Part shown: piece by piece, positions 17,448 to 59,300 of the stretch
Layout of the letters: the number at the start of each line of letters is the position of its first letter
Position numbering within the stretch: position 1 is the stretch's first letter
Assembly: GCA_047495785.1 (NCBI GenBank)
Contig: JBLDXI010000074.1
Location: 868,001-932,000 of the forward strand
Length of the DNA: 64,000 bases
Direction of reading: 5' to 3'
From: Lepidodermella squamata
Lineage: Eukaryota > Animalia > Gastrotricha
Notes under the pieces: model-generated
What the model was told of the DNA's origin: nothing
The model's database searches: none
What the model saw: the letters and a program-made list of their open reading frames with translations, nothing else
Made by a program: the position numbers and the translations under genes

Positions 17448-18335
17448 ATGTCACGCTTGGCTGATCCGGCAAGTCGATGGCTGGCCTACGTATGGAACAA
17501 TGGCTCAACTATTCGGATTTTCGATGGACGTGCAACTGGACCCGACTCAGCGCCCTCTATCAGCTCTCTGAGCCCAGCATTCGCCGCAGTTTCAGTCCGT
17601 TTCTACGTTGACAACTTCAACTCTCAGCCCATCGGAAGATTCAGCGTTAAAGGATGTAGCTACGTCAATGACATGGGATTTGCTGGCTCTGGCTTTTCCG
17701 TTCGTCTCGCAAATTCTACGCCAGCTACAGCAGCTGATGTTTCAAATCTACCAAAATTCGCTGCGGATGTGGAAGCTGTTCCGTATCGATCTCGGGTTCT
17801 TCTTACATCCTACCCAGGGAACTCAAGCCGCTATTTGGTTGTTACGGCTAAGAGTCCTGATTTCTTGTTGTGTCAAGTCAGTGTTGGCTACGACGGAGCA
17901 ACAAATTTCGCCCTATGGAAATCAGTTACTTCGTCCAGTTTCAATCAAACGGCCAATTCTGCTTTAACAATTGGTGATTCAGTGACAGACCCAATCGGCC
18001 CACAACCTGCCACTTCTGGCTTGTATTTTCAAGTTGATCTCGGCTCTTCTTTCCCAACAATTTCAAAAATCGTCCTAACCCTGTCTGCTAGCAGCGGGTG
18101 GATAAATTATGCCAACCCTGTCGGGTTCAGGCTGACCATCCGTGTCGGCGATGCTTTAGCTCCAAATCCTCAGAAAAACGAAATCTGTGATTTCTACGAT
18201 GGGTATCGCATTCCGAATTTGGTTGCTGGACAATCGATCGAGTTGTATTGCACACCACCGTTGGGTGGACGCTACGTCACGGTCGAGAAGATCGGCCAAA
18301 TCCAGATTATTTTCACCGAAATTCGCATATTTTAA
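17448..18335 (+). CDS. Protein with C-terminal F-type lectin / F5-8 type C-like domain; 5' end uncertain
   Basis: YFQVDLG..ISKIVL..LTIRVGD....NEIC..IELYC.PPLGGRYVTV..IIFTEIRIF is the typical fucolectin/discoidin pattern. No clear signal peptide in the ORF. Confidence 0.6.
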   Translation: MSRLADPASRWLAYVWNNGSTIRIFDGRATGPDSAPSISSLSPAFAAVSVRFYVDNFNSQPIGRFSVKGCSYVNDMGFAGSGFSVRLANSTPATAADVSNLPKFAADVEAVPYRSRVLLTSYPGNSSRYLVVTAKSPDFLLCQVSVGYDGATNFALWKSVTSSSFNQTANSALTIGDSVTDPIGPQPATSGLYFQVDLGSSFPTISKIVLTLSASSGWINYANPVGFRLTIRVGDALAPNPQKNEICDFYDGYRIPNLVAGQSIELYCTPPLGGRYVTVEKIGQIQIIFTEIRIF

Positions 18336-18770
18336 CAAAATAATTCTACATGGTAGGATCGCCAAAACAGTTGGATTTGATAAAAGCTCTCTTAATTTTG
18401 AACGCAAGCAAAGCACTTGTACTTAATATGCACATCTCAAATAGTTATTTGTGATAATCAAAATATATAAGATCATTTTTTCATCATGGTCTATCAGTTT
18501 ATAACGCCTCTTCACTCGCTGCTTCTGTTTTTTCTGGGATTTGAAATAAAAGTAAGAATCCACTCTCGGTTAATCCAGCTTCTCTGTATGCAAGTCGAAT
18601 GCTCTTCTGATCATTCGCTCATTGTTTCTTACCGTCCTATATGAATCCCTAGATGAATTCACGGTCTGTTAATTCGGCCGATATTTTTGTTCATCACTTA
18701 AAAACAGGCAATGCCACTTTAATTGTAGAACACGTATGAATCGATCCTTTATTATTGGAAATATTCAACA

Positions 18771-20578
18771 TTATTCAACAAATTGACTCTCAGCCGAATC
18801 AACAATTTCCTCGTCCCCTTGCGTTTTCTTTTTCGGTTTACGGGTAGTCTTGGGGTTCGAAGGTTTACGAGTCGTTTTGCCACCAGATGGCCTTTGAGTC
18901 GCCTTTCTCGTCGTTCTCCCGCCATTCGGCTTACGAGTCGTGCCCGGCTTGCGAGTAGTTTTGCCTCCGCTGGGTTTCTTCGTCGTCTTACCGTTGCCAG
19001 GCAGCTTGCATGTCACCCCTGCCGCTCGAGTACAGGGCGGCTGGTCCTTCACCGACTTCCTAAATCGCCTTAGCTCCTGCCACATCAGCGTGATCACAGA
19101 TCGAGCGACGATTCCGAGCTCCTTTTCTACGACTTCATTGAACGAGCTAACCACCTTCAAGGCATACTTTTGCTTGTCATTGATCGCGACATCCGGAGTA
19201 CTGGGAATGAAGTACCTGAAAAATTAAACCAATTAATTAAAAAACGTTTTAAATTTGAATAAAGCTTTCATCTTTCTACATGGTTCGTAAGGCTCTAAAT
19301 AGTCAGTTTCCAAGGGTTCTAAAAGTTCCAAAGGTTCCAAAGGTTCCGAAAGTTCAAAAGGTTCCAAAGGTCATAAAGGTTCCAAAGATTCTAAAGGTTC
19401 TGAAGGTTCAAAATAATCAGGCTCCAAAGGTTCCAAATATTCTCATATCGAGCTTTAACGCCTGATTTCACATTTTCAACGTTTGGTCTGTTTACAGGCC
19501 TCTATCTTGTGAACTTCGCTATTTTCCTGCCAGCTATTACGAGCCCTCTTTCAAACATCTACCAAGCCACGAAAATCTAAACATTGAAAGATTCGAGCTT
19601 GCGAAGCTTTTAATATAAGTTAAACCAACTTTTTAAACTACCTCGAGGATCCTAATTGGATTAACAGGACTTGTTTCGCCTGGTTTATTTCCCCATTTCA
19701 TGCCAAAAGGGCCTAAGGACCTGTGGTTTTTGGGTTTCCCACCTTGGGCCTTGCGAGCTGGAAGTACGATGCCCCCATTTCCCCGGTACTTCGCGCCCTG
19801 ATTCCAGCCCACTGATGTAACTATTTCGGAATTTCGAAGTAAAATAAAAGAGTAAGTTTTACCAGGTGATGTAAGACTCGCGAGCATTACCAGCTGCATC
19901 TGCAGCATTGCCGTAGATGTCGATCAGCTTGTTCTCCTTGGTGCAAATCTTCTGCAGAATCTCAAACTTCCTCGCGTCATCCGTGATGCCCTTGTTCACA
20001 AAGCCAACGCCCTTGCCATTGAGAATGTGCGTCAGCCCAGCATTGTCGTTGCCACGTACCATGAACATCTCGTCATTGAACGCATTCTCCCGCTCCCACC
20101 TCCGCTTAACTTCGTCCGAAGCTGGGTTCTTCAAATTCTTCCGCCGCGTCGCATACTGCCCCTGAATCACCTGCGTAACCGCAAACCGATTCTCGCCGTA
20201 CTGGGCTATCAACTCATCGACAAGTTCCTTCCGCAATTGGGCATCGGTTTTGGCGCCGGCTTTCCAAGTGTTGTCAGCAGCATCTGGCAAGAAGCCGTCT
20301 TCTGTTTCGTCGGTCGAGTTATCGTCGACATCGATACCTTCGTCGATTGAAGATTCGTCCCAATACTCATCGCCTTCACCTTCGCCGTCCGAATCTGAAG
20401 TTTCGTCGTGTGTTTCTTCTGTGGGTTCTTCGCCATCGTCGAAACCTTCATCGGTCAACTCTGCCTCGGCGTTGGTTTGATCAGACAGCGGATGTTCTTC
20501 TTGATCAGTTTCGACATTGGCATCTTCGAAACTCGCGACAAGTGAGATGAATAGCAGAAGTAAGAAACAAGCTCTCAT
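18771..20578 (-). CDS. Secreted 386-aa protein: acidic N-region, putative BECR-fold RNase-toxin-like core, basic KTTRKP-repeat tail (exons 19863-20578, 18771-19215)
   Basis: Signal MRACFLLLLFISLVAS; splice TG|G joins the two ORFs in frame (ESYITW-YFIPS); motif VRGNDNAGLTHIL..FVNKGI. The gene model is more secure than the toxin call. Confidence 0.75.
19308..19437. repeat. Degenerate 9-bp tandem repeat (CCAAAGGTT)n, intronic
   Basis: Repeated ccaaaggtt-like units inside intron 19216-19862. Confidence 0.8.
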
Positions 20579-24205: not shown

Positions 24206-26145
24206 TCATACGCAGTAAGTGTCACACAGAATTTGGTACTCGGGCAGTGTCACTTTTCGATGGCTAAATGGCACAACAACGTCACGGCCTTTCAGCAGCG
24301 CTCCGCCATAAATTCTAAAAAAAAATAATAAATTTGAAAAATTCGAAAAACGCTTTTAATGAGTCCTCAATTGAATGAGGCGGCTAATTTAGGACAAATT
24401 ATTACAAATCAATCAATTAAAAAATCGAATTGAACAGACTTCTCTGATTTTTTTGTAACTTTTTTGTAACTTTTTAACATAAAAAATCGCATTTCTAATT
24501 TTTGCCATTTAAAATTTAAAAACTTGAAATTTGAAGTTTGAAATTTAAATTTTTTTCAAATTTTCCCCATTTTTAAATCTGAATTTTTCCGCGATCTTGC
24601 AGTAATTTGATGTATTTTTTCCAATCACTCACACATCAGGCATGTCTGGAATTCGACCACGGGCTATGTAGACGAGTTCGCTTGGGTGCTTGCCAACCCG
24701 GCCGCCGACAATCGCCCCGCATGGCACCATATCAGGCGTGTAGCTATGCCGCCACGTTAAATTGTCACAATCTCGGCAGACGAGAACTTCGTACTCGGGC
24801 GACACCTTCTCCTCGCCGTTGTGAAGCACGATGCAACCGCCGAGGTGGGTCGAAACCATGCCGGGTACGACTTCGCCTGATCCGAATCGCACCCGTCCGA
24901 CGTACAGCTTGTCACCGGCTGCATTGACGCCAATTTCGACTGAGTAAATAGGCACGGCGCCGTCACATGCGTCTTCCCACCTATAATTTCCAAAATTTAA
25001 GGTTATATTCACCAATATAATGAGTAATGACCCGATATTTTTATTCCCAGCCCGTTGAACTCGAGATGAATAAAGAACATTTCTCAAAAATGCGGAAAAT
25101 CTGAGATATACATTTTTTTGAGCGCCAAAAATGAGTTTAGGGACACTTGTAAGATTGTTGTCTGATATTAAAATTATTTACCATAAATTTAAGCAAATTG
25201 TACCAGAGTCTACTTCTTCGTTGAAACTTGATACCAGGGAGGCTCATAAATATTAACCTAATTTTTGTGTTTCCAACGACCCATAGAGATTTGATGATTT
25301 TGGTAATTTTACCGAAAAACCCGACGGTTTCATGGACGGTTTGGTAATTTTATAGTAATGTCGTTATTTGACCTGTTTCACCTGGAATTCTCCGGGTTTT
25401 TCATTATGTTACATGGCTTGAAAGTTATCATTAGCACGGCCCAGGATACCCAGGATCGGATTCCTTCTCTTGCGTTACTTGCGACACACCCTGTAACTTC
25501 GACAAGGTTTAACATTTGGTTTCGTGTGAATTTCGTTTATCCTCTTTCAATCCCAAATTTGTCGGCCGGGTAAAATTTAGTATTCAAACTTTCAGAGGTA
25601 ATGAAGCTAAACGAAGAGAGCTCAAGGCACCTCAAGGCATCGAGATTCACAGTTTAATTAATTAAAAAAAATAGTAAAAATTGTTATAATTTCAAGAAGT
25701 CTCATCGAGCAAAAGAGAAAAGAATTAATGTGGCTTAAAATGAGGAAAATTTGCATTAAAATAGCATAAATACGGCAAGTCAACTGACTGCGAGAGCAAC
25801 CTTAACCTTTACCTTATAAGACCGTTAGTAAACCCATAAACCGGGAAGAGAGCTCCCAAACAAGTCAAATGGGTTCTCAAAAAGGTGATCGTGCAACCAG
25901 TGTGTCCTATTTTTTTCTTCAAAGTTCAACGGATTTGAAACCAGTGACTCCAATCCACAGTTTTGGGAATTTAATAATTTTAGCCTGAGTTCCGCAGCCA
26001 AAATTCGGCGATTTTGTGAGGCTTTTTATGGCTTCGATATTCGATAAGTTGACGATTTTTGAATTTGATGAGCCGATCAATCAGAAATTTTCAACGGAAA
26101 TCACCGGGTCAAAGAAAAAACCACTTACCAAATATTGCCCGCCAT
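24206..26145 (-). CDS. DM9-repeat protein, copy 7 (3 exons)
   Basis: MAGNIW|WEDACDGAVP..LYVGRV..PGMV..YEVLVC..YIARG..DV|IYGGALLK..VPFSH..YQILCDTYCV*. Confidence 0.82.
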
Positions 26146-56365: not shown

Positions 56366-59300
56366 ATGATTGTTCTCATTTCACTTATTTTGTCAATTTC
56401 GGTGAGTTTTCAAGTCAATGGCATTCTGGACGAGGACTACCCCTTACCTGGATTTCCTCATCAACATTTCGCTAATCCGGGCATGAGCGTGAATATTTCT
56501 GCATCGATACCTCAAGCTCCACTGGTATTCACTCTCGGTATTGTGCTCACTAATCCGCAAATGACTGAGGCGTCGATTCGACAAGTTTTGAGTGCTGTGG
56601 AACAGAGGGAGACGAGTATTGTCCCCCTCGTAGCGCCTTACTTCACCCCGCATGGATCGCCAATTCTGCCACAAAGAGCTACTCACATTAATTACCGCCT
56701 TCAAGTAAATTTCCAAAACCGAATTCTAAAATTATTCGCGGCATTTTCTGCCTGTGATCTCCGTTGTATTCTGGAGTTATCTTTTTACATTTTATTCAAT
56801 TTCAGGTAAATCCCGTCAATACTCATAACATGGGGCTGAATCGGCTTCTTAAGACCCTCTTCTGCTCCAAGGCCTCTCAAGGCACAAATGCTTTATTCAT
56901 CCTGGTCGATAAATCGTCAACGCGCCATAACCAAGGCGCCCAACTCACGAATATGCTGGCAACGTTGGCTCAAAACATTGGACTGCCTATGATAGCGTGG
57001 TCCTCGTCTGCGTCAGGCTTGAGGGGTCTTCAAACATCGCCATCGGAAGAGCAAGATAGTAATATGGATACTTTACTACTAGCCCCAGCTATAAGAAGCC
57101 AAGCTAGAGCAATTTACTCGTTCTTGAAGCAATACCATGGAGACAGAAAGGTAAACATTGGAACTCTTCCCTTCTTATTTTTAGTTATTAAAATCTCCTT
57201 CAGGTAACTGTTATTGCCTCAGTTCGTACTCCGGGCTATGAAACCTTCGTCAATGAAATTCGAGCTACTTCAGATATCGAAGACAAACGGGAATCGATTT
57301 TCGAGTTCGACGCGCATCAGTATCACATGTCTTCGAGGATCATCCAAATCTTGCTACTCGATGACGCGTTTGCTGAAAATATGAACCGAGAACTGGGTTC
57401 GATCCGAGACCATACTGAAACTAGAGCCTTCGTTGTCTTCGCTAATCAAGCAGATAGCGATAAAATTTTCGAGGAGGCTCATCATTTAGGTATATTAATC
57501 CCGGAATGGTTTCGTAAAATTGATTTTTTTCCTCAATATAATTTTAGGCATGACTTCGGCAGACTGGCTTTGGGTTCTCGGGAAACCGTCCCTGGGTGAT
57601 CAGGGTGAGCACTCGGTTATTCCTCTGAATTACGTCCCAGGGCTAGTCGCTGTGACTTACAATACCTCTTTGAGTGCTCAAATTGTTGCCCTGCGCAGTG
57701 CAGTTCAAATCTGGTCTGAAGGCTTTCAAAAATTTGCTCATCTAGCTAGGGCTACCAGCTTACAATCTTCGCCTCCCAAAGCCGTGAAATTAGCACCTGT
57801 AATTTCGTGCAATAATTCTGCTCAGGTAAGAAGAAATATTTCCTGGCACCTCCGGTATTGCATGTCCTTTTTAGGTGAAATGGCAAAATGGCCACTTATT
57901 CTACCGAGTTCTGAAGCATCGCCTAGCCAAGCTGATGAATAGCAGCCAATCGTCGGCAATTCAAGGCCTGAGTGATATCATCTTCTTAGATTTGCAGTTC
58001 AACCGCAGCTGGAAGAAAATCGGAGGTTGGTCATCGACCACTAACATGGCCAATATTGACGATTCGCGGTGGCTGCAAAGCTTCGAACAGCGGCAAAGAT
58101 ACGCTATGTCTCGTAAGTTTTGCTAGAGCTCAATTTCGCGTCTGTGAATAGCATTTCATGAGAAATTCGGTTGTAACCAATTTTTTCTAACAATAGCGTG
58201 GGGAACACCTACAGGTGAGTTGCATGAGGATTTTATAGAAGGGTAGAATTTTTGTTAACGGAATGCACCATCTGAATGGGTGTTTATAGCGAGAATTTGA
58301 TGTTTCTGTTTAGAATGCAATCCATAATCCATGACATCATTCATTTATTCAAGTTTTAATTTCAATCAGGTAAGAACAATGTTGTGAGAATAGCGACGCT
58401 AGAAGAGCCGCCCTATGTGCTCTATGAATTCCCCGACTCGAAAACAGGGGCCTGTGATCGAAAGGCGATCCCCTGTCGTTTGTCGCCCCTTGCATTCGTG
58501 AAAATGCCTGAAACTAAAGACGACGCCCATATGCATGTGCACATATCGACAGCGGCTGAAGACTCGATTCACAATCACCATCGTAACGGTTCAATGATGT
58601 GTTGCGCTGGATTTTCGATGGATCTACTCAAGCGATTATCTCATGACATTGGGTTCAATTTCGAGCTGTTCGAAGTTCGTGACCGAAAATGGGGTGCTTA
58701 CGATCAGGTGACAGGTGGCTGGAATGGCTTGGTTCAGGTATGTTGGACTTTAATCAGTTTATACGAAAAACCCCGTTTAAATAGCACCAAGATCATTTTA
58801 GAACCAGAAGAACCAAATTATAGAAAATTGTCCTTCTTTTATTTACTGACCGATCTCGATGTAAAAAAAAGCTTAATTAAAAACGTTCTCTGTTTGGGAA
58901 AGTTCTGGCGACCTCTTCATAGCTTGGTGGAGGTTCGTCCATACTTTCATTTATTGTTGCATTCTGCTGCGGCTGCTGTGAAATGGAAGCGCTAATAGAC
59001 TGCATAGCCACAATAGGACTTTCACATGCTGCCACTCTGTTAGCTGAAACCTGCCTCTGAATTCGCTGGTTTCTCATGATATTCCTGGCGTGAACTGCTT
59101 CAAAATAGGCGATTCTCTCGGCTTGTAATTGCGCTAGCCGAGCTTTGAGGGAAGCAGTTCTAGCCAGTGTTCGATTTTGTTTGCTGTTACTACTTGCTGC
59201 CGAGTCAGATGACCGCATTTCTTGACTAGGCGCGACTCGATAGTAGGCTTCTCCTTTTGATTTGCAATCGCCGTTCAAGCACTTGATAAGTAGCACCATA

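Follow-up and report, generated by a model that had tools for sequence, protein, structure and literature searches.

A predicted secreted protein of the gastrotrich Lepidodermella squamata with a core related to a bacterial CdiA-CT toxin family

Gene structure, expression and paralogue

The window analyzed here is a stretch of 64,000 nucleotides from the gastrotrich Lepidodermella squamata (GenBank assembly GCA_047495785.1, contig JBLDXI010000074.1, positions 868,001 to 932,000; coordinates below are those of the window unless stated otherwise), and it carries, on the minus strand at 20578..18771, a gene of two coding exons whose product of 386 residues joins a signal-peptide-like N-terminus, a very acidic region, a core spanning about 190 residues and a tail of basic repeats. 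Structurally, coding exon 1 (19863..20578, minus strand) opens with an ATG at 20578, specifies residues 1–238 plus two bases of Trp239 and ends at a GT donor after 19863, and coding exon 2 (18771..19215, minus strand) specifies residues 239–386 up to a TAA stop codon at 18771–18773; contigs from two sequencing runs, X1 and X3, support both exons, with the translation as additional support for the second. Between them lies a spliceosomal intron (19216..19862, minus strand) of 647 nt with GT..AG ends, which is in phase 2 and splits the Trp codon as TG|G. An AATAAA hexamer (18748..18753, minus strand) about 18 nt past the stop codon is a possible poly(A) signal, read from the sequence.

Coverage from runs X1 and X3 is confined to the exons, and the DNA run X2, from a second strain, covers exons, intron and flanks; X1 was taken as cDNA from this coverage pattern, its RNA label being a guess. 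A 911-nt contig from X1 joins 19212 directly to 19860 (the cut shifted by +3, with CT..AC ends on the plus strand) and omits exactly 647 nt, in agreement with an earlier note, made from the letters of the window alone, which had proposed a single spliceosomal intron and suggested checking the 19216–19862 splice. The gene is genuine, spliced and expressed in the animal. Contamination was rejected, since the gene is interrupted by an intron, yields a spliced transcript, belongs to a pair of paralogues and sits on a megabase animal contig (over 1 Mb; the assembly totals 121 Mb). Compared with exon 1 of the window, the second strain has two synonymous changes and the replacement V120I. Within the intron, positions 19308–19413 hold a 9-bp tandem repeat (TTCCAAAGG, 11.8 copies), and the X2 assembly contains two variant contigs across 19554–19672 (seven differences), with loose ends at positions 19336 and 19372, which suggests that the intron varies between alleles or copies.

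At the protein level, all the parts that the earlier note had listed (signal peptide, acidic region, core motifs and basic KTTRKP tail) are present in the 386-residue translation. Residues 1–16 (MRACFLLLLFISLVAS; 20531..20578, on the minus strand like all protein features that follow) are hydrophobic and read as signal-peptide-like; residues 17–104 (20267..20530) form an acidic region of 88 residues with 38 Asp or Glu and no Lys or Arg, for a net charge of −38; and residues 105–169 (20072..20266), conserved between the paralogues, form a helical linker or the N-terminal helices of the core. The part of the core encoded by exon 1 contains FMVRGNDNAGLTHIL..GFVNKGI..KLIDIYG, and its residues 171–221 (19916..20068; MFMVRGNDNAGLTHILNGKGVGFVNKGI...KLIDI) constitute a toxin-signature segment that matches positions 50–98 of a profile of the bacterial CdiA-CT(BWH57) family. 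The exon-2 part of the core, residues 240–296 (19043..19214; YFIPS..KYALKVVSS..GIVARSVITLMW, with the motifs KYALKVVSS..SVITL), presumably forms beta-strands. It is followed by a Cys-x7-Cys loop (residues 300–308; 19008..19034), both Cys of which are invariant between the paralogues, and by the basic Thr/Pro-rich repeat tail (residues 312–369; 18825..18998) with six [KGR]TT[RK][KR][PA] units of the KTTRKP type, after which a short acidic end closes the C-terminus. Over residues 297–386 as a whole, the tail counts 23 Lys or Arg against six Asp or Glu (net +17).

The same contig holds, at a distance of 117 kb, a paralogue (locus L002, G000:C74:1004082-1007438, coding at about L002:1147-2385) that follows the same plan, with a signal peptide (N-terminus MKFGFFLLLLLAASAA), an acidic stretch (42 Asp or Glu and one Lys or Arg in 103 residues), and then core, Cys loop and basic KTTR[KR]P tail (26 Lys or Arg against four Asp or Glu). 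It is about 48% identical to the window gene in the core part of exon 1 and 57% identical in that of exon 2, and its intron, of only about 52 nt, interrupts the same codon in the same phase. That a second copy repeats these parts, and has its intron at the same position and in the same phase, argues that the architecture is not a chance reading frame. Evolutionarily, the core has, between the two copies, a saturated proportion of synonymous differences (pS) of 0.77–0.83 and a proportion of nonsynonymous differences (pN) of 0.29–0.34, for a pN/pS of about 0.35–0.44 (exon-2 core, pN 0.29 versus pS 0.83), and in the flanks pN approaches pS, at 0.45 versus 0.63 in the acidic region and 0.68 versus 0.74 in the tail. 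The saturated pS, the low pN of the core and the flank pN near pS therefore indicate an old duplication with the core under purifying selection; the charged flanks keep their composition and not their sequence, the acidic region evolving fast.

Relationship of the core to a bacterial toxin family

The earlier note had held that a G-N-x-x-A-G-L-x-H-I motif followed by F-x-x-K-G-I resembles toxin domains of BECR fold (Barnase/EndoU/Colicin/RelE), and this motif turned out to be the signature of a bacterial polymorphic-toxin C-terminal family in which 7M5F is a solved BECR-fold member. The 7M5F structure is the CdiA-CT toxin of Serratia marcescens BWH57, described as a BECR fold by its depositors and as a toxin without recognisable sequence relatives among known BECR enzymes (PMC8616854). 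Among sequences of the PDB, 7m5f_C was the top match to the animal protein, with an E-value of 0.16 for the single sequence and 0.051 for a two-sequence profile. With 54 residues of 7M5F, 25 bacterial loci were retrieved from Enterobacterales, cyanobacteria, Campylobacterales, actinomycetes and Flavobacteriaceae, and a hidden Markov model (HMM) of 19 bacterial toxin domains scored the exon-1 core of the window gene at 25.8 bits for the sequence and 23.1 bits for the domain, and the paralogue at 19.0 bits (hmmsearch), both at the same HMM positions and within profile positions ~50–103. As a reference, 5,000 shuffles peaked at 9.9 bits for the window gene and 6.6 bits for the paralogue, six-frame pieces of the 64-kb window gave 23.6 bits for the gene and 5.5 bits for the runner-up, and a six-frame search of the entire 121-Mb genome with the bacterial alignment ranked this gene first (E 0.003). 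Comparison of the core with the bacterial family by hhalign yielded a probability of 91.4% (E 9e-7, 49 columns), against 0.3% in a control comparison with an alignment of CdiI immunity proteins. With a profile dominated by cyanobacteria (about 140 sequences), the window gene still scored 22.0 bits, and the nearest named clusters by language-model features were PBECR3, PBECR1, LPD3 and MuF_C.

Over about 50 residues the sequences align co-linearly, MFMVRGNDNAGLTHILNGKGVGFVNKGI with IFLEKGNSKSGLQHIVEEHGDQFAQIGV and then KLIDIYGN with KIVGYQGA, and for the window gene alone MAFFT sets ARESY against GRPIY. Four of the four invariants of the bacterial alignment A4 (G53, G58, H61 and I62) are found in the GNDNAGLTHI of the window gene and three of the four in the NSERAGLRHI of the paralogue. 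What the animal and bacterial proteins have in common is thus the pattern [IF][FM]xxxGNxx[AS]GLxHI...F...[KI]G[IV], then K[IL][IV].[YI].G, and the first proposed catalytic His; the animal gene differs in having a signal peptide, acidic region and basic tail instead of a PT-VENN/CdiA carrier and CdiI, and the animal protein in a 21-residue insertion after helix 1 and an identity of only about 30% in the matched part. The C-terminal strand block of the bacterial proteins, RPIYE...NGYIVGAN, was not recognised in the animal protein, whose exons were compared with the profile one at a time; for this block (consensus RPIYE...NG[YF][IV]VGAN, with N124, G125 and V128 invariant), exon 2 alone scores nothing against the profile. 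Overall, the first half of the core is, at the level of sequence profiles, very probably homologous to the CdiA-CT(BWH57)/7M5F family.

The bacterial family itself occurs in at least five phyla. All of the best 120 among 188 matches to a mixed profile came from bacteria; most were standalone cyanobacterial proteins of about 125 residues, and CdiA tips were also present. Within what the libraries cover, bacteria are the only carriers of the family apart from this genome. NCBIfam has no name for it, and the family is uncurated; 13 of 17 members match Pfam PBECR1 below threshold (at most 17.9 bits, versus a cut-off of 27.6), and the 7M5F-type family is probably colicin-like BECR, distantly related to PBECR1. 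In one CdiA carrier (locus L007), PT-VENN and CdiA_helical lie upstream of the toxin and a CdiI of 98 residues lies downstream (L007 1773-2069); this CdiI agrees with the residues named for the immunity protein in PMC8616854 (K5, D9, Y10, W16, D25 and Y98). In a cyanobacterial locus from a Nostoc metagenome-assembled genome (L018, 774-2145), a standalone toxin gene of about 124 codons is followed by a CdiI-type immunity gene, and a second, truncated immunity-like open reading frame (ORF) lies upstream.

Scans of the animal exon pieces with Pfam, NCBIfam, PHROGs and PADLOC gave nothing meaningful, the library matches to LcrG and ValRS falling far under their cut-offs. PBECR1 and PBECR3 (PF18809 and PF18812), BECR nucleases of phage polyvalent proteins, are the nearest language-model clusters, yet the animal protein is no member by Pfam criteria, and hmmscan gave no match to either for the animal pieces at E ≤ 1. 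A word search with exon 1 found nothing. The broad vertical distribution of orthologues across animals that the earlier note had set against its own proposal was not seen: when 1.84 billion representative proteins were searched exhaustively with HMMER and a two-paralogue exon-1 profile, no orthologues came back. Two matches from that search were set aside, one (P0001) as a junk tandem-repeat translation and the other (P0002, a bacterial protein of 527 residues at E 1e-5) as probably not meaningful, its score being summed over repeats and its Pfam matches being repeat artefacts; P0002 consists of six helical units of about 70 residues (SD.QLRDMV..AF.QQYGRNATATE.FI.QWM) that resemble the animal helical linker DAQLRKELVDELIAQYGENRFAVTQVIQ. 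A metagenome pattern scan yielded two loci, both rejected because FNDEMFM occurs in them by chance, within a low-complexity protein of protist type.

Candidate active site, proposed function and alternatives

For the 7M5F toxin, H47, E51, H52 and R89 were proposed as active-site candidates (PMC8616854), and in colicin-like BECR proteins the active-site His lies in the helix preceding the core (bioRxiv 10.64898/2026.08.28.747851). The equivalent of His47 is retained in the window protein as His184 (20027..20029), the position of Glu51 is Gly, preceded by Asn in the window gene and by Glu in the paralogue, and Lys189 (20012-20014) aligns with His52. The earlier note had remarked that a second His is absent, and so it is, its place being taken by Lys in both paralogues; the same holds for one bacterial subfamily, represented by a Capnocytophaga toxin of the Flavobacteriaceae subgroup (L031), whose HIMEGKW has the Glu-Gly-Lys of the paralogue's HIYEGKR. 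A bacterial member with Lys at the second-His site means that Lys there is a natural variant among bacterial members and that the second His does not strictly define the family.

Functionally, we posit that this gene encodes a secreted animal protein with a core descended from a toxin domain of the CdiA-CT(BWH57)/7M5F type, acting as an RNase-type effector with a masking acidic region, a reading to which we assign a probability of roughly 0.55. In mechanistic terms, a signal peptide would have replaced the bacterial PT-VENN/CdiA carrier, CdiI may have become unnecessary because a secreted protein never meets cytosolic RNA, and the targets of the protein, an RNase-type effector working outside the cell, would be microbes or ingested cells. 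The part of the conserved active-site His would fall to His184, with Lys189 substituting for the second His as in the one Flavobacteriaceae toxin subgroup. The acidic stretch (−38) may mask the basic tail (+17) and the RNA-binding face until secretion or processing; in 7M5F, it is CdiI that covers the electropositive face of the toxin (PMC8616854). The KTTRKP repeats, basic and probably O-glycosylated, would hold the protein on anionic surfaces. The odds that RNase activity has been retained lie somewhat short of even, and an antimicrobial role is doubtful. More ambitiously, the protein could be a self-contained secreted weapon, with the acidic piece as a cleavable substitute for CdiI and the KTTRKP tail as a device for surface binding or entry into microbial or prey cells; we think this unlikely, and if true the protein would parallel a polymorphic toxin, but one made by a eukaryote and carrying its immunity in cis.

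A number of observations weigh against the reading as a secreted RNase-type effector, and they concern its chemistry, its flanks and its ancestry. The second His, kept in about 90% of family members, is Lys in both paralogues; an Arg aligned with R89 is found in the window gene only, the paralogue being without the seven-residue segment that holds it; and for the invariant Leu-Glu of the bacterial F-L-E-K-G-N both animal proteins read F-M-V-R, with Val in place of Glu. With these positions replaced (Glu to Val, His to Lys, and Arg lost in the paralogue), catalysis may therefore be lost, and no activity was reported for the 7M5F toxin itself (PMC8616854). The roles given to the acidic and basic flanks follow from charge arithmetic only. 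As to ancestry, the matched signal spans only about 50 residues, and the exon-2 core searched separately, where the last strands and two conserved toxin positions would be expected, has no match in the bacterial profile, the PDB or Atlas. Structure prediction was carried out on exon-1 pieces only (139 residues): AlphaFold2 (AF2) models had low confidence, with a predicted local distance difference test (pLDDT) score of 43.5 for a two-sequence alignment and 59.6 for a 59-sequence alignment, Foldseek with the exon-1 model placed 7m5f fifth at E 9.8, and VIA gave generic helical matches with Z ≤ 4.3.

Both AF2 runs placed helices at 12–27, 31–47 and 55–64/68 of the 139-residue piece, and the 59-sequence model has helices directly after the His, as in 7M5F, from an alignment that is mostly of the 7M5F family and is thus partly circular. 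The helical linker aligns only weakly with bacterial helix 1 (MAFFT). We infer a BECR fold for the whole domain, which in the colicin-like class comprises a helix with the active-site His, a core helix and a four-stranded antiparallel sheet, and the BECR-type core of the earlier note stands as far as the profile match to the family of 7M5F carries it, the unmatched exon 2 and the low-confidence partial models leaving the AlphaFold and Foldseek check that the note had suggested short of a structural match.

Among the alternatives, the one that survives best accepts the homology and drops the enzyme: the scaffold would be a binding module, for RNA or another polyanion, in a secreted mucin-like matrix or coat protein, and the flanks would serve assembly. 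The replacements of the LEKGN Glu by Val and of His52 by Lys and the paralogue's want of an Arg89 equivalent all fit such a module, as does a tail that is Thr/Pro-rich and basic, like glycosylated linkers. Both paralogues have nevertheless kept the first His and the G-N-x-x-A-G-L-x-H-I block despite saturated synonymous divergence, and one bacterial toxin subgroup likewise has Lys at the second-His site, so that we regard a non-enzymatic protein as an unlikely outcome, on a par with the self-contained weapon.

A lesser possibility is that a short motif arose by chance or convergence in a lineage-specific orphan secreted protein without bacterial ancestry. It would account for the empty Pfam and NCBIfam scans, for an exhaustive search with the animal profile that found no bacterial toxin at E ≤ 0.001, for the unmatched exon 2 and for the missing structural match. 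Against it stand a score of 25.8 bits where shuffles reach 9.9, the top rank of the gene genome-wide, the hhalign probability of 91% versus 0.3% for the control, the agreement of both paralogues on the same profile positions, a co-linear alignment that runs through KLIDIYG/KIVGYQG and ARESY/GRPIY, and language-model neighbours that independently indicate PBECR families. Taken together, we hold chance resemblance to be improbable and descent from the bacterial family to be the better reading.

Origin of the domain, comparison with known systems and neighbouring genes

The same genome holds a third carrier of the toxin family. On contig C34 (L033/L036, G000:C34:661000-669500), a multi-exon gene encodes three ZZ domains (L036:3928-4606) and DUF4781 (L036:4972-5967) and ends in a toxin-family tip, RHGNTKIGVDHILEGHAEQF, in its last exon (L036:6534-7010), which is preceded by a GTGAGT..TAG intron. 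This tip retains the second His (HILEGH), and hhalign matches it to the bacterial alignment with a probability of 91.5%; a word search with the tip found no relatives. The ZZ-DUF4781 gene differs from the window gene in having no signal peptide, in bearing the domain as a C-terminal tip and in keeping the second His. For the immunity partner, a search of the animal genome with a CdiI profile gave no match. Bacterial polymorphic toxin systems pair an N-terminal delivery module (PT-VENN/CdiA, Rhs or LXG) with an immunity gene next to it, and the animal gene has neither.

Evolutionarily, horizontal acquisition of the domain followed by domestication is well supported because the gene has an intron, a native animal context and expression, and its relatives are otherwise bacterial. 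In the earlier note's proposal of a horizontally acquired, domesticated RNase effector, it is therefore the acquisition and domestication that hold up, on the profile match, the bacterial distribution, the intron and the expression, the RNase carrying the lower odds given above. A phylogeny, which that note had also suggested, was built from 52 columns: the two paralogues form one very long branch among the cyanobacterial short forms, with weak support, a further point on the contrary side, and the ZZ-DUF4781 tip groups with Flavobacteriaceae variants, 0% of the bootstrap trees uniting both animal types. These placements, with their long branches, hint that the family may have been acquired twice in this genome. 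The weakest alternative, that there was no separate transfer and the domain was copied from within the animal lineage (for example from the ZZ-DUF4781 tip) or is an old animal domain lost elsewhere, has in its favor that a third carrier fused to ZZ x3 and DUF4781 exists in the genome, but we consider it very improbable, since hhalign relates the tip to the profile of the window-gene type (A1) at only 23.6% and each of the two to the bacterial profile at 91%, the two types fall with different bacterial subgroups and are never united in the bootstrap (on weak support and long branches), and no animal relatives were found for either.

Animals have taken over some bacterial competition toxins, among them tick cell-wall amidases and some nuclease and deaminase domains. 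Toxin domains in animals were listed by Zhang et al. 2012 (PMC3482391), and the dae amidases of ticks and other eukaryotes are interbacterial toxins that were taken over (bioRxiv 10.1101/2020.04.10.036376). Like dae, the window gene would be a bacterial competition toxin that moved to an animal and came to have eukaryotic gene structure and secretion, without an immunity partner; unlike dae, which are cell-wall amidases acting from outside the target, a BECR RNase must reach RNA, and the window-gene family has moved much further away from its relatives in bacteria. For the secreted RNase A family of vertebrates, cationic RNases of host defence with a link to the folds of bacterial toxins and EndoU, an origin in the world of bacterial toxins has been proposed (PMC7297114). 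The window protein, as predicted from its sequence, would share with RNase A that both are secreted, basic, RNase-type animal proteins; it would belong to another branch of the fold class, and RNase A has disulfide-rich cores, compared with one Cys in the core here. In a limited literature search, we found no report of a CdiA-CT or colicin-like BECR domain as a secreted animal protein, and no description of an acidic-region/basic-tail architecture flanking such a domain; animal takeover of a bacterial competition toxin is thus known, and the toxin family and flanking architecture described here have not been found reported and are apparently new.

With the window gene, the uncurated bacterial family around 7M5F gains a eukaryotic branch, and one toxin family is seen to have entered this genome, or to have spread within it, in two different gene contexts. 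Should the core have remained an RNase, one would have to ask how a toxin that acts inside cells is delivered from outside the target cell, and how the animal protects itself in the absence of an immunity protein. For self-protection and delivery, the acidic and basic flanks are candidates that can be tested.

As for the surroundings of the gene, about 4 kb from it an ORF at 24629–25087 on the minus strand contains two DM9 repeats (Pfam E 3.6e-21) and is an ordinary invertebrate gene, and further along an exon-sized ORF at 58384–58995 on the plus strand matches Lig_chan-Glu_bd, the ligand-binding domain of an ionotropic glutamate receptor (E 1e-11); both mark the setting of the gene as that of an invertebrate animal. 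Tail to tail with the toxin-like gene lies an uninterrupted ORF of 295 residues (17448–18335, plus strand) with no Pfam match, the C-terminal part of which (YFQVDLG...GRYVTVEK...) may resemble lectin domains of the discoidin/fucolectin type.

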